Of a DNA stretch of 64,000 nucleotides, positions 30,953 through 38,743 are shown piece by piece (position 1 is the stretch's first letter; each line of letters begins with the position of its first letter). Under the pieces are notes generated by a model. It worked only from the letters and a program-made list of their open reading frames with translations. It had not been told where the DNA came from and did no database searches. The stretch lies in the sequence record KU726251.1. One strand, 5' to 3'. The translations under genes were made by a program, and so were the position numbers.

Positions 30953-30990
30953 CAGGCATCCTTCGGGGTGCCTGTTTTATTTTTTTTTCT
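30953..30990 (+). terminator. Intrinsic terminator
   Basis: CAGGCATCC-ttcg-GGGTGCCTG plus T tract. Confidence 0.85.
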
Positions 30991-31682: not shown

Positions 31683-31720
31683 CCCTCTTACCTTCGGGTA
31701 AGAGGGTATTGTCTTTTTTA
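31683..31720 (+). terminator. Intrinsic terminator (duplicate of 4526)
   Basis: CCCTCTTACC-ttcg-GGTAAGAGGG. Confidence 0.85.
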
Positions 31721-32628: not shown

Positions 32629-33285
32629 ATGGCGAAGGCCCCTAAAACTGTAGCAAAAGATTCAACGGCAAGCAGCGCGGTTAAATCCACAAAGTCGCGT
32701 ACCACTGAATCCACGCGTACATCTAGCATTCCGAAGCCGGATGTGATTGTACCGATCAGCGAGCGCCTGAAAACGATTCACATCGAACGTGAATTTCCGA
32801 TTGACCTTGGTCAGGAAATCGTTGCGGTTAATCTTGGTAGTGATGTCCGCTTTACTATCTATAAAGGCGCGCATCTGAACAACATGGTGCTAACCCGCGG
32901 TGATGAAGTTATCGGTCTGTCTCGTTACGACACGCAAATCGAAAACATCTATCCGGTGTTTGCAGTAGCGATGTTGCGTTTGTTCATGCAGGATAAAGCC
33001 GACCTTTGTGGCCAGCTTGCGGGAATGGCTGATCGTGTTGGCCATATTCTGCCGACGCTGGTGAAACTGTACCCGGTTACGATTGATGTGGCGTTCACTA
33101 CGGTAGACAACAACCACGGCTATATCGTGCTGACCAAAGACGGTAAAGTTATCGCTGGTAATCTGACTGATAACGAAGTGCAGAAGCATATGGACAAATT
33201 TGCGTTCATGGTGAATCGCCTAGTGCACGTCAGTGTCAAACATTCCGAAACTTGGACGGCGCTTGTCTCCAAACCGGAACTGTAA
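32629..33285 (+). CDS. Hypothetical protein with S/T/K-rich N-terminus (218 aa)
   Basis: RBS TAAGGAG. Confidence 0.8.
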   Translation: MAKAPKTVAKDSTASSAVKSTKSRTTESTRTSSIPKPDVIVPISERLKTIHIEREFPIDLGQEIVAVNLGSDVRFTIYKGAHLNNMVLTRGDEVIGLSRYDTQIENIYPVFAVAMLRLFMQDKADLCGQLAGMADRVGHILPTLVKLYPVTIDVAFTTVDNNHGYIVLTKDGKVIAGNLTDNEVQKHMDKFAFMVNRLVHVSVKHSETWTALVSKPEL

Positions 33286-33287
33286 TC

Positions 33288-33318
33288 ATTAAGGGGTCTT
33301 CGGACCCCTTAATTTTTT
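33288..33318 (+). terminator. Intrinsic terminator
   Basis: ATTAAGGGGTC-ttcg-GACCCCTTAAT plus T tract. Confidence 0.85.
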
Positions 33319-33323
33319 GTCTT

Positions 33324-33347
33324 TTTACGCATTATCCTCATGTTGTG
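33324..33347 (+). promoter_or_regulatory. Bipartite motif TTTAC-N15-TGTG heading the GNAT-dam operon
   Basis: TTTAC 33324-28, TGTG 33344-47. Confidence 0.55.
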
Positions 33348-33374
33348 ACAGCAATACCTTTTGAGGGCATTACA

Positions 33375-34372
33375 ATGAAAACTGTGGCTAAATTGTTTCG
33401 CACCAGCATCCGCACTGCCGAGTTCCGAAATAACGTCGGTACCGATACTGTACGAGCACGCCGCCTAAAAGAGTTTCTAAAGGACGAGACTTATTCTGTT
33501 TACGTGGTGAAGAATAAAGAAACCTGGGAGGGTTATTTAGTGGCCACCTATCGACACGGTGACCCTACACTAACCTGTCACTATTTTGAGGAGTTTGTAC
33601 CTGGGGCGTTCGATAAAGTTGGTTTGGCCCTTGTGCTCGACCATACCGGATTCGAATATATGTCGTGTCCAGCACCTACTGACGATGTTGAACAAAAACT
33701 GGTCGAAAAAGGGTTTGTTCTTTCAGATATCGTTTGGGCATGTCATTCTAAACTGTTTGACAAAGTAATCACCGCATCGGAAATCAAGATTATTTCTGGT
33801 GATGCATACGCAGAACTTACCAAGGAAGATAAAGACGTTATCCTGAATTTGATTAGCGGTGCAATTTGCGAAGAGCTAGAATACGATGTGCGTGGCTATT
33901 ATACGCACATTGGTCCGTTAGCAGAAACAGTAATAGCAAGAATTCAGCACGCTAATGTGGAGACTGCAATTTGGCGAGACGGTCATGATATCGTCGGTAT
34001 TGCCAGATGCGCTTGGTTACACCAGGCGTCGTTGAACTTTCTGGTTTAACCGTTGCACCCACGCACCGTAAACGTGGCATTGGTCGCCGGCTAATGGGCG
34101 CGCTATTCGATTTCGCACAACGTCATTCCGACCAAGTCTATATTGAAACAGCTGCTGATAATAATCCAGCAAATCACCTGTATGGCAACATCTTACGTTG
34201 CAAGCAGGTACTGCGTACACTAACGTTGAAACGCGATCCTGAACTTATTAGCTGGAAACGGGTGAATGGAAACCGCGCCGATCGTGTGCTGAAAGAAGAA
34301 CCTAGCTTTCCGGTGGAGACTACAACCAGGCTGACTATTAGTGATATGTTTCAATCTGGCATGAGAGGGTGA
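33375..34372 (+). CDS. Tandem (double) GNAT acetyltransferase (about 332 aa), one apparent missing base at about 34011
   Basis: Degenerate N-domain ending LVEKGF; C-domain GIARC-(A)LVTPGVVELSGLTVAPTHRKRGIGRRL...NNPANHLY after the frame repair. Confidence 0.8.
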
Positions 34373-34378
34373 TAACGG

Positions 34379-35197
34379 GTGATAAGACCAATTTTAAAAT
34401 GGATGGGTGGTAAGAGTCGCGTACTTCCCGAGCTGCTACAGGTGCTTCCAGATGCTGAGTATTTCGTTGAACCGTTTGTGGGTGCAGGGTCAGTGTTTTT
34501 AAACACTAAATACCCGAACTATATTCTCGGCGACACGAACCCAGACTTAATCGAGTTACTGACCATGGCGCGCGATCGTCCGGAAGCGCTGATTCTGGAA
34601 GCAAAGGCGCTCTTTGCAAATGGGACGGACCGCGGTCTGTACATGAAACGACGCGAGGAATTTAACAGCGAAGCAACCACGGGGAAACCTAATCTCCAGC
34701 GCGCCGCGATGTTCCTGTATCTTACACGTCATGGTTACAATGGTTTGTGCAGATACAATCAGTCGGGTGGGTTTAACGTGCCTTATGGTCAACACCCGAA
34801 CGGTGTCTATTTCCCTGAAGAGGAAATTCTGGCGTGGGCAAAACGTTGTTCGGAAACCAACGTCGAGCTGCTCTGCGCGGACTTCCGCGATATCCTAAAT
34901 AAATGCCCATCTAACGCTGTGATATACGCTGACCCGCCCTATATCCCTCTTTCGGATACGGCTAAACACGCGCAGTATCACAGCAAAGAATTTTCACAAG
35001 CTGACCACCGCGAGTTAGCGAAACTTTTAAAACAACAAGCTGCCGATGGCAATAAGGTCGTTCTGTCAAACGCAGATACGTTACTCACACGCGATATTTA
35101 TTACGGCTTTACTTGGCGCGAAGTTCAGGTAGGTCGATATATGTCTGCGGATGCGAATAAGCGTAAAGCGGTGACGGAGCTAATCGGCACCTTATAA
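34379..35197 (+). CDS. dam: Dam-like N6-adenine DNA methyltransferase
   Basis: LKWMGGKSR, EPFVGAGSV, RHGYNGLCRYN..G.FNVPYG, YADPPY; closely EcoDam-like. Confidence 0.92.
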   Translation: MIRPILKWMGGKSRVLPELLQVLPDAEYFVEPFVGAGSVFLNTKYPNYILGDTNPDLIELLTMARDRPEALILEAKALFANGTDRGLYMKRREEFNSEATTGKPNLQRAAMFLYLTRHGYNGLCRYNQSGGFNVPYGQHPNGVYFPEEEILAWAKRCSETNVELLCADFRDILNKCPSNAVIYADPPYIPLSDTAKHAQYHSKEFSQADHRELAKLLKQQAADGNKVVLSNADTLLTRDIYYGFTWREVQVGRYMSADANKRKAVTELIGTL

Positions 35198-35206
35198 GGT
35201 ACCAAC

Positions 35207-36010
35207 ATGCAACTATTTAATCTATACGGTATGGACAAAAACGACCTGACCGTAGAGTTTAGTGGTCGACTGACCACCTTGGGGCAACTCCGTGAACGGA
35301 TTCAAGATTTGCGACCCGTCGCAGACCAAGAAGACGATCATTGGTTAGTGTTGAGTAATAGCGGTCGTGCGCAAATGTATTTTCGTGGATGTCGTTCAGG
35401 TATTGTTTACTACATCTACGAGCTGCACGTGCTCTCCGAGCCCCTGTTCCACGAGTGGAAGCGTTTGACGCGACTCCTGGAAGTGCAGATGCTTGATATT
35501 ACCTGTTTCCCGCACGACACCGAACACGCAGCATTATACCAGCGTCTGGGGTTCGAAGCTGTAACGAAACGTGTGGAGATTACTGTTAGTCCGAAATACG
35601 GCTTTACGTCAGACCCATCAGTTGTCCCGTTGGAGACATTGTCATTAGAACAAACCCAAGATGTTTGCTATCTGATGCGACCTACGCTAAAAGACGCAGG
35701 AACGCGAGAGATGTTGGGCGAGTTAGCAAATGGTTTTGTTTCCGCGTTTGTAGGGTTACACGGCCAGAAGCCGTTTTCGTTAATGCTTTATAAGGAGTTC
35801 CCGAAGAGCATCGTTACTGAGCAATTCTGCTGCCAAACTTTTGACCCGGTTGCTTACTCGGTAGAGTTTCTAAAACACTACCACGCCATTTTGCATTTGG
35901 CGGGACAGAAAGGTAAGAAGGTCAACATGGGTGTTGCGATAGAGCACGAGTTTCCTTCTATCGAAGGGTTAGAGTATCGTGTAATCACGCACCACTACAC
36001 CCTTGCGTAA
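35207..36010 (+). CDS. Degenerate double-GNAT-like protein (267 aa)
   Basis: AALYQRLGFEAV ends the first half; the second half has matching length and spacing; no canonical R/QxxGxG. Confidence 0.5.
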   Translation: MQLFNLYGMDKNDLTVEFSGRLTTLGQLRERIQDLRPVADQEDDHWLVLSNSGRAQMYFRGCRSGIVYYIYELHVLSEPLFHEWKRLTRLLEVQMLDITCFPHDTEHAALYQRLGFEAVTKRVEITVSPKYGFTSDPSVVPLETLSLEQTQDVCYLMRPTLKDAGTREMLGELANGFVSAFVGLHGQKPFSLMLYKEFPKSIVTEQFCCQTFDPVAYSVEFLKHYHAILHLAGQKGKKVNMGVAIEHEFPSIEGLEYRVITHHYTLA

Positions 36011-36019
36011 GGAGAGAAT

Positions 36020-36832
36020 ATGCTGAGAGTTATCGAACGCACGGAGAGGATTCTGGACCGAACGTGGTTGGAAGACCGTAAGGCGTTATCGTTGTTAAAT
36101 GATATCGATCCTTCCACGTTACAAGATGAACGTCGTCTTTACTACCGAATCTTTGAAGTATTCAGTCGGGACACAGTTGCGCCTGACGCGATCGTGCTCT
36201 GTCTGGACCACGGATACATGTTAGAAGTTATCAATATGGTTCGTGCTTTAGACGCCCAGTTAACCTCGCTTGCGGATGCTTTACTCCGCTCAGCGGGGTG
36301 TAACTACGCGATGCATTTTACTCGTTCTGAAGGGGACGAATATGCTCGCATGGGCTTTTGTTGCGAAACGATAAACTACCGCAAAATTAATACATTGGTG
36401 CCTAGCCACGATGAGGATTTCTGTGGGGATGTCAGTTCGTTGTTCGATAGTAAGAAAGCGTTCTTGGATTGGGTTAGAATGCTTTACGGTAAAAGCTCTA
36501 TCTACTCAACGCTCGTTACGGGCGGGAGGATGATGTCGTGGCGGAACAGCGATAGTTACAAACTGACAGTGCTCACACATCGTGGACAACGCTGGGTTAT
36601 TGGTGGGTGGTTTACCGCAGAAGGGGTGGTTACTCTAGCTCGGGAGGAGTTCGGACTGTTGATGCACTGTGTCCAGTCCGAATTACCGGTGGGGGATGAA
36701 CTGATTTACACCTACCACCAATATACTGGGGGGCCTGCCGCAATGTGGTTATTAGAAAATGGTTGGCTGCCCGAAAGTTATGTGTACGGACGTACTCTGA
36801 AAACTAGTAATGGAGAAGATAATGCAAATTAA
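36020..36832 (+). CDS. Degenerate double-GNAT-like protein (270 aa)
   Basis: EYARMGFCCET and WLLENGWLPES at the ends of the two halves resemble GNAT C-terminal motifs. Confidence 0.45.
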   Translation: MLRVIERTERILDRTWLEDRKALSLLNDIDPSTLQDERRLYYRIFEVFSRDTVAPDAIVLCLDHGYMLEVINMVRALDAQLTSLADALLRSAGCNYAMHFTRSEGDEYARMGFCCETINYRKINTLVPSHDEDFCGDVSSLFDSKKAFLDWVRMLYGKSSIYSTLVTGGRMMSWRNSDSYKLTVLTHRGQRWVIGGWFTAEGVVTLAREEFGLLMHCVQSELPVGDELIYTYHQYTGGPAAMWLLENGWLPESYVYGRTLKTSNGEDNAN

Positions 36833-37100
36833 TCGTACAGTGTCGAAGTCTAAAGAAGTCGTTTACAACGTTGAAGACGGTGATGTAATGCAGTTTCGTG
36901 CCGTCATTGACGAACAGCACGTACTCCAAGTCGTTTATTCGAAAGAAGAAATGACTCGCGCACATAGCCGCGTGTTAGAAAAACTCGTTGCGAAAGCCAA
37001 ACAGCGCGACGGTATTAAATCCTACAACGTCATGTACGGTTATCAGCTACGTGAAGTGGAAGGGGAGTTGCTAATCACCCCTGTTCCGGTAACGGCGTAA
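36822..37100 (+). CDS. Hypothetical protein (92 aa)
   Basis: RBS GGAG before ATG 36822. Confidence 0.7.
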   Translation: MQINRTVSKSKEVVYNVEDGDVMQFRAVIDEQHVLQVVYSKEEMTRAHSRVLEKLVAKAKQRDGIKSYNVMYGYQLREVEGELLITPVPVTA

Positions 37101-37140
37101 TTCGCCATTGTATGACCCTTAAATACCGTTGAGGTTAACT

Positions 37141-37623
37141 ATGGATATGATCGAATTAGGTCAGCTCCCTCAGCACGATTTTGATTTAGGCGTGCGTCAT
37201 GAGGAAGGGGCCGACGCGAACACACTTATGGCCCGCTACTACGAGCTACTGACCGGTCAACCGTTGGACGATGAGTATATCAACCGTTTTGAAAAACTGT
37301 TGGCACAACTCATCACCTCTAACGCAGAACGCATTGGCATGTTAAACGAAATGAACTTTGCTGATGTGGAACCGTCTGACGCTCAGAAGATTCTTATCGA
37401 TGGTCCTGTGCCAAGCGATGAGGTACAAGACCTTCTGGCAGGTATCCGTGCAGGCTTCGATGAAGCTGCTGAGAAATACGCGGAAGAGCTGGCAGATGTC
37501 GATTTGGCTGCGCCGGTTGACCCGAATCCATCTGCAGAGGAGACTGCAGCTGCGAAATTGAAACTCGCACGCTTTATCTGTGCTGCTGTCTTGACAGACG
37601 ACCGTGAAGAAAACCAACTGTAA
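37141..37623 (+). CDS. Acidic hypothetical protein (160 aa)
   Basis: RBS GAGG; about 35 D/E vs 12 K/R by hand count. Confidence 0.75.
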   Translation: MDMIELGQLPQHDFDLGVRHEEGADANTLMARYYELLTGQPLDDEYINRFEKLLAQLITSNAERIGMLNEMNFADVEPSDAQKILIDGPVPSDEVQDLLAGIRAGFDEAAEKYAEELADVDLAAPVDPNPSAEETAAAKLKLARFICAAVLTDDREENQL

Positions 37624-37629
37624 GGCCCG

Positions 37630-37666
37630 CCTCCTTGCCCACGGGTGAGGAGGTCCCTTTTTATTT
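37630..37666 (+). terminator. Intrinsic terminator
   Basis: CCTCCTTGCCC/GGTGAGGAGG imperfect stem plus T-rich tail. Confidence 0.65.
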
Positions 37667-38703: not shown

Positions 38704-38743
38704 CCCTACCTAACTTCGGTTAGGTAGGGCTCTTTTTATTTTT
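38704..38743 (+). terminator. Intrinsic terminator
   Basis: CCCTACCTAAC-ttcg-GTTAGGTAGGG plus T tract. Confidence 0.85.

Follow-up and report, generated by a model that had tools for sequence, protein, structure and literature searches.

A block of three predicted tandem-GNAT-fold genes and an orphan dam gene in the jumbo phage SEGD1

Gene content and boundaries of the block

The 64,000-nucleotide stretch of sequence record KU726251.1 analyzed here (the window) belongs to Enterobacteria phage SEGD1, a SPN3US-type jumbo phage of the genus Seoulvirus. Positions 33200-37200 of the window match SEGD1 at 100% and Salmonella phage SPN3US at 98.7% identity. They contain a plus-strand gene block which an earlier note, made from the sequence alone, had singled out as a possible DNA modification system and had read as a GNAT gene, dam, and genes for proteins of 267, 270 and 92 amino acids (aa). 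This order was confirmed, and a gene for a 160-aa protein follows (Table 1). In SPN3US, the genes are named SPN3US_0104 (GNAT, 332 aa), 0105 (dam), 0106, 0107, 0108 and 0109. Structure models assign to the 267-aa and 270-aa proteins a tandem-GNAT fold, which is shared by the family of the first protein.

The genes are closely spaced: 6, 9 and 9 nucleotides (nt) separate the GNAT, dam, 267-aa and 270-aa genes, and a 23/11-nt overlap leads into the 92-aa gene. As judged from the sequence, the block is a tightly packed unit of approximately 33314-37654, the edges of which are set by two 11-bp hairpins. Because of these bounding hairpins and the short gaps, we propose that the unit is cotranscribed. 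The earlier note had described one operon without an internal terminator, and this was largely borne out, since no credible terminator was detected between the bounding hairpins (the sole match was a 5-bp hairpin at 35760); the unit, however, extends one gene past position 37100. The minus-strand open reading frames (ORFs) across the block are short and all nested within coding regions, and an Rfam search over 30-40 kb gave no matches.

Table 1. Features of the transcription unit and its borders (window coordinates)
Feature	Position	Strand	Remarks
Terminator-like hairpin	33288..33313	+	11-bp stem, 4-nt loop, T run; ends the upstream unit and forms the left boundary
Tandem-GNAT N-acyltransferase gene (putative), frameshifted	33375..34372	+	Ortholog of SPN3US_0104 / YP_009153398.1 (332 aa)
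dam, EcoDam-type orphan N6-adenine DNA methyltransferase, 272 aa	34379..35197	+	GTG start; DPPY and FxGxG motifs
267-aa protein, predicted tandem-GNAT fold (PHROG 9941, SPN3US_0106)	35207..36010	+	N lobe ~1-128, C lobe ~135-267
270-aa protein, predicted tandem-GNAT fold (PHROG 13677, SPN3US_0107)	36020..36832	+	N lobe ~1-124, C lobe ~134-260
92-aa protein, no assigned function (PHROG 7896)	36822..37100	+	Overlaps the 3' end of the 270-aa gene
160-aa very acidic protein (isoelectric point [pI] 4.1, PHROG 8221)	37141..37623	+	Final gene ahead of the terminator
Terminator-like hairpin	37629..37654	+	11-bp stem, T run; right boundary

A promoter-like motif had also been claimed upstream of the unit, but our search for a sigma-70-like promoter at this place found none. 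Strong hairpins with a 4-nt loop occur at five positions, 30953-30974, 31683-31706, 33288-33313, 37629-37654 and 38704-38729, and each is followed by a T run and then by a TTTAC or TTTAA element just 5' of the next gene. Behind the hairpin at 33288-33313, the T-rich stretch ends in TTTAC. This pattern may represent a terminator-promoter arrangement for phage RNA polymerases. We make no promoter claim, since the window contains the heptamer TTTTTAC no more often than expected (8 occurrences versus 14.6).

Fold, paralogy and cofactor site of the GNAT-like proteins

The 267-aa and 270-aa proteins had no match in Pfam, NCBIfam, PADLOC or among the PDB sequences, and no function is assigned to their PHROGs. 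Profile searches of the PDB sequences with both families yielded chance matches only, and PADLOC revealed no relation of the GNAT-fold proteins to any defence system. Both families are small: the 267 family comprises 12 clusters at 50% identity among 1.84 billion proteins, and the 270 family has 15 matches among 5.8 billion. All members belong to SPN3US-like and Erwinia jumbo phages. A borderline match to the 267 family, the 779-aa P0127, was dismissed as spurious, because it is a repetitive Por-secretion protein.

For both proteins, structures were modelled with AlphaFold2 from alignments of 15 (267-aa) and 13 (270-aa) sequences, with pLDDT scores of 90.3 and 86.3, respectively. In both models, the order of strands and helices assigned by DSSP corresponds to the GNAT topology, present twice (mixed beta sheet with the alpha3-beta5-alpha4-beta6 core). 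In line with this, the top-50 lists of Foldseek searches against the PDB consisted of GNAT-superfamily structures throughout, with tandem GNATs leading (best E values, 4e-10 for the 267-aa and 1e-9 for the 270-aa model). The leading matches were VipF, the clavulanate ORF14 tandem GNAT, MAB_4324, MshD and Eis. Thus, the idea of three two-lobed GNAT-like proteins, for which the fold of the products of the genes at 35207 and 36020 was decisive, holds at the level of the models, both of which are GNAT-like. According to the DSSP strings, four of the six lobes carry the xxGF/GW motifs, which had been taken to end each lobe, at their alpha4-beta6 junction. The fold-level, model-based annotation of two families with no assigned function, PHROG 9941 and PHROG 13677, is new.

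The relationship between the three proteins emerges only from profiles and folds, as pairwise BLASTP detected no similarity among them. The 267-aa model matched the Kwan ortholog of the 332-aa GNAT in a Foldseek search of BFVD with an E value of 3e-15 and a template modeling (TM) score of 0.67 over 278 columns covering both lobes; the accession of the Kwan protein was confirmed by cluster look-up. In this search, the Kwan GNAT ranked directly after the orthologs of the 267-aa protein itself and was followed by Derbicus gp103 (E value, 2.8e-13). Furthermore, hhalign aligned the GNAT family with the 267 family collinearly over 211 columns across both lobes (probability, 69%; E value, 4.5e-5). 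The sequence link of the 270 family to the others is weak (P ~0.007-0.009). Early profile comparisons with 6-7 sequences had given a weak signal, and deeper alignments provided a usable one for the GNAT-versus-267 pair only. The comparison of Derbicus gp103 and gp104 with the 267 and 270 profiles relies on shallow alignments (effective number of sequences, 1.4), and gp104 is an unproven candidate for a tandem GNAT.

A hidden Markov model scan of all ORFs of the window revealed no further GNAT-fold paralogs. In BFVD, the 267-aa model additionally resembled A0A1B2IE03 (Kwan, 215 aa), A0A1B2IDM8 (Huxley, 214 aa), A0A1B2IBG0, J7KKF1 (phiEaH2, 256 aa) and A0A1B2IGE2 (278 aa), which are proteins of Erwinia jumbo phages matched with E values of 1e-5 to 1e-10; A0A1B2IGE2 has the same length as Phobos gp104. 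As suggested by these models, additional GNAT-fold paralogs may exist elsewhere in Erwinia jumbo-phage genomes.

The first gene is a single 999-nt ORF in SPN3US. The SEGD1 sequence differs from it by 10 substitutions and by a single-base deletion that causes one frameshift, so that the 332 aa given in the earlier note hold for the intact SPN3US ortholog but do not correspond to one ORF in SEGD1. The SEGD1 record carries no annotation on this stretch. When searched separately, both pieces of the gene strongly matched the family profile; the Pfam GNAT models matched the downstream piece only. A programmed frameshift was rejected, because more than 30 relatives, all other good-quality ones among them, carry the gene as one intact ORF. 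Some SPN3US-like records are fragmented and should not be used to judge gene integrity: in LR535901, LR535903-LR535908, LR535911-LR535913 and LR535917 (SPFM1, 5-10, 12, 14, 15 and 20), the region is matched in up to 40 short pieces and the proteins are broken up, which resembles error-rich assemblies.

In the first protein, the N lobe is degenerate and the acetyl-coenzyme A (CoA) motif is found in the C lobe alone. Pfam Acetyltransf_1 matched the C lobe in all 12 GNAT-family members tested, and the Q/R-x-x-G-x-G/A motif of this lobe is canonical in three of six aligned members, with the G-R invariant in all six. From these features, we infer that the first protein is a genuine acyl-CoA-dependent transferase. 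The motif is conserved nowhere else: it is absent from both lobes of the 267 (15 sequences) and 270 (13 sequences) families, and motif and Pfam checks thereby upheld the claim that only the first protein has it. Moreover, 27 columns are invariant in the GNAT family, many of them polar, versus three in the 267 family and five in the 270 family, with the three families diverged to a similar degree (mean column identity, 44-48%). Judged by sequence, the 267-aa and 270-aa proteins appear to have lost CoA binding and probably catalysis, too. They carry the GNAT fold but cannot be classed as active GNATs.

The Dam methylase and the proposed history of the block

The identification of the second gene product as a Dam adenine methylase in the earlier note was correct. 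It is a D12-class methylase (Pfam MethyltransfD12; E value, 4e-54) and passed TIGR00571 with 258 bits at a cut-off of 115. It matched E. coli Dam (2g1p) over the full length with an E value of 1e-58 and DpnM (2dpm) with 2e-40, and T4 Dam with just 4e-10. The E. coli equivalog cut-off was not reached (248 versus 441 bits). The S-adenosylmethionine-binding FxGxG motif and the catalytic DPPY motif are both recognizable in the translated sequence and when it is aligned to 2g1p, and the best PADLOC model was that of an orphan methyltransferase. The full-length matches to the GATC enzymes E. coli Dam and DpnM suggest that the phage enzyme is GATC specific. Outside the clade, the closest Dam proteins originate from temperate enterobacterial phages and have at most ~45% identity.

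Since the alignment of the GTG-started 272-aa ORF to E. coli Dam opens at residue 3, the true dam start is probably at 34379 and not at the later annotated position (region 34379-34402). A similar difference is found in the record of phage Asesino (L003:4172-4258), where dam is annotated with 243 aa and the ORF has 272 aa.

SPN3US encodes a diverged chimallin homologue (PMC9365700) and is therefore probably nucleus forming. No other 4-base palindrome in the window (1-64000) is as depleted as GATC, which was observed 119 times versus 249 expected from base composition or 300 from a trinucleotide Markov model. The remaining palindromes are mostly near expectation, with CTAG and AATT mildly depleted. 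The GATC depletion deserves attention because the same, probably nucleus-forming phage encodes an EcoDam-type methylase, and it bears on the handling of GATC-directed host functions.

The order of the GNAT, dam, 267, 270, ~92-aa and ~160-aa genes is conserved in Seoulvirus, Machinavirus and Wellingtonvirus. In Erskinevirus (Asesino, phiEaH2 and Stratton), no homolog of the first GNAT was detected anywhere at E values up to 0.1; dam (70% identity, 272-aa ORF) and both the 267 and 270 genes (42-50% identity) are retained. A metagenomic relative (L010) has the GNAT gene, dam and a 267-family gene without a 270-family gene. Additional 270-family copies were detected directly 3' of the 270 gene in ChrisDB (L004:6598-7356; hmmsearch E value, 3e-12) and in the metagenomic L016 (L016:7604-8350; 4e-10). 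In L016, the extra copy is followed by a 214-aa gene to which no relation was assigned. Altogether, one to four tandem-GNAT-fold genes follow the first GNAT in these phages, and the array genes counted after dam number one to three.

Dam synteny across the SPN3US and Erwinia jumbo relatives was found as the earlier note had expected. In all 12 lineages examined, dam is located directly upstream of the 267-family gene; the two genes overlap by up to 4 nt or lie up to 12 nt apart. These lineages were found by the 267-family search, and in all of them the region from the thymidylate kinase gene to beyond the block is collinear.

In the outgroup Derbicusvirus (Derbicus, Phobos and pEa_SNUABM_38), the thymidylate kinase gene is followed by three neighboring genes for proteins of about 290-320 aa, and there is no dam. 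The first two are GNAT genes recognized by Pfam, and the third encodes 278-296 aa. The simplest history would start from an old tandem array of tandem-GNAT genes beside the thymidylate kinase gene, with a host-type dam later inserted behind its first copy; the downstream copies would then have degenerated and changed in number. This fits the fallback of the earlier note that dam had simply inserted into an acyltransferase block. In Derbicus, gp97 (L018:2744-3220) is a single-domain acetyltransferase encoded upstream of thymidylate kinase.

The last gene of the unit was also analyzed. The 160-aa protein had no match in Pfam or the PDB. It contains 35 D and E residues and is kept in all relatives; its charge lies within the range of DNA mimics.

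Interpretation and comparison with known systems

Our preferred reading, to which we assign a probability of roughly 55%, is that the products of the block have independent functions: a host-directed acyltransferase (broken in SEGD1), two GNAT-fold binding proteins lacking the cofactor, and an orphan methylase for the GATC sites of phage DNA. The block would be a cotranscribed, nonstructural cassette of a SPN3US-type, probably nucleus-forming jumbo phage, and an EcoDam-type orphan dam would have entered the paralog array in an ancestor common to Seoulvirus, Machinavirus, Wellingtonvirus and Erskinevirus. The first protein is predicted to be an acetyl/acyl-CoA-dependent N-acyltransferase that acts on a host or phage protein or on a small molecule, with the active site in the C lobe and the substrate placed between the lobes. 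The 267-aa and 270-aa proteins, with CoA binding gone, would be stand-alone, noncatalytic binding proteins (pseudoenzymes) and not obligate partners of the first protein. Dam would methylate GATC on phage DNA independently, and host Dam may fail to reach the phage DNA inside the phage nucleus. The position of dam among the GNAT genes would be historical, not mechanistic.

The literature is consistent with a host-directed role of such enzymes. For jumbo-phage GNATs, including those of the group 1 nucleus-forming phages, host proteins are the predicted targets, and an additional single-domain, RimI-like GNAT of SEGD1 (AMR59843.1) is cited as possibly acting on the translation apparatus (Iyer et al., PMC7824862). 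Our literature search yielded neither a paper on phage tandem GNATs nor one that discusses the genes of this block, and the main text of the SPN3US virion proteome paper does not mention gp104-gp108. An array that expands and contracts, with most copies lacking the cofactor site, is a pattern typical of host-interaction gene families.

Several points count against independent functions. Both structure models were built on shallow alignments of 13-15 sequences. The loss of the motif alone does not prove that catalysis was lost; indeed, Fem-type enzymes share the fold, lack the CoA motif and are still catalytic. The frameshift in the first gene could be a real mutation or a sequencing error in the SEGD1 record. 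Finally, the constant adjacency of dam and the 267 gene leaves room for a functional link between their products, and synteny argues neither way, because all genomes are collinear from the thymidylate kinase gene past the block.

The three proteins could instead form a hetero-oligomeric acyltransferase, in which the first protein is catalytic, the 267-aa and 270-aa pseudo-GNATs are auxiliary or substrate selecting, and Dam is a passenger. This would agree with the shared fold and probable paralogy of the three genes, with their close spacing and cotranscription, and with the cofactor site in one member only. To this extent, the idea in the earlier note of one catalytic subunit with two pseudoenzyme partners stands, since one of the three folds bears the cofactor motif. 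The obligate partnership is less well supported. The first GNAT is dispensable: Asesino, phiEaH2 and Stratton lack it and SEGD1 has it frameshifted, while dam and the 267 and 270 genes are kept, and this weakens the proposal of a catalytic subunit with obligate partners. Furthermore, L010 lacks the 270 family yet keeps the other two members. Thus, the members do not covary and are unlike obligate subunits, and we consider such a complex unlikely.

An equally doubtful alternative, suggested by the models, is that the 267-aa protein, the 270-aa protein or both are active transferases that do not depend on acyl-CoA and might use, for example, aminoacyl-tRNA as donor in the way Fem/FemX-type enzymes do. 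FemX, the aminoacyl-tRNA-dependent peptide synthases Sbb17/Sba18 and the C-terminal domain of MprF were among the significant Foldseek matches, and a FemAB-family phage protein was among those in BFVD. However, these matches rank below the CoA-dependent tandem GNATs and have lower TM scores. The few invariant columns of the two families, with very few invariant polar residues, and the lack of a functional match in Pfam, NCBIfam and PHROG also argue against conserved catalysis of this type.

Less likely still is a functional pair of Dam and the 267-aa pseudo-GNAT, the latter serving as a regulatory, targeting or nucleus-import adaptor or altering the adenine chemistry of Dam. The location of dam immediately 5' of the 267 gene in every lineage, including start/stop overlaps, is the sole constant part of the block and speaks for such a pair, which, if real, would constitute a methylase accessory protein of a kind not described before. 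The adjacency is weak evidence, however, since the lineages were collected by the 267 search and the surrounding region is collinear. The 267 family, moreover, would descend from an array that exists without dam in Derbicus, and the 267-aa protein is acidic (pI 5.9). No partner requirement is known for EcoDam-type enzymes.

The earlier note had favored a Mom-like system for the acylation of DNA adenines or for anti-restriction, with the GNAT-fold proteins acting on adenines together with Dam. Such a system is very improbable: the case for it is an analogy to Mom, a GNAT-superfamily enzyme with Dam-dependent expression (Iyer et al., PMC7824862), along with the strong GATC depletion in the window, which suggests pressure on this site, but Mom did not appear in the Pfam, PHROGs, NCBIfam and PDB-sequence results or in the top-50 Foldseek lists (PDB and BFVD), the closest structures are protein and small-molecule acyltransferases, some members that retain dam have lost the sole cofactor-competent GNAT or carry it in broken form, the Derbicus array has no dam, the 267-aa and 270-aa proteins (pI 5.2 for the latter) are acidic, and Mom-family enzymes were placed in group 2 jumbo phages and not in the group 1 nucleus-forming phages (Iyer et al., PMC7824862). 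This removes a tempting interpretation, and we see no sign of a new DNA modification system. The components of the block are of known kinds; the novelty lies in the fold assigned to two families and in the history proposed for the genes.

Of the known systems, phage Mu Mom shares with the block the superfamily and a co-occurring Dam activity only; the phage proteins described here are two lobed, gave no search match to Mom, and show nothing suggesting DNA binding. The Rac-type GNATs of phiKMV-like phages (Iyer et al., PMC7824862), an example of phage GNATs for which host-protein modification has been predicted or shown, are likewise phage encoded and located in nonstructural regions, and host takeover is the published prediction for jumbo-phage GNATs, but they were not retrieved as relatives of the SPN3US-type enzyme. 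The SEGD1 Dam resembles E. coli Dam (2g1p) and DpnM (2dpm) in the full-length match, the DPPY and FxGxG motifs and the passed TIGR00571 model. It differs from E. coli Dam in being a phage-encoded orphan below the E. coli equivalog cut-off, and it is far from T4 Dam.

The closest structural counterparts of the GNAT-like proteins are the tandem GNATs VipF of Legionella (6wqc and 7wx5), clavulanate ORF14 (2wpw), MAB_4324 of M. abscessus (7q3a) and the mycothiol synthase MshD (2c27), which likewise combine two lobes in one chain of ~270-330 aa. MshD, like the first protein, has a productive-looking cofactor motif in the C lobe only. The identity of these enzymes to the phage proteins is 9-14%, and the TM scores of 0.4-0.5 point to a different orientation of the lobes. 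In contrast to these tandem GNATs, the 267 and 270 families are devoid of the CoA motif in both lobes and are confined to one jumbo-phage clade.

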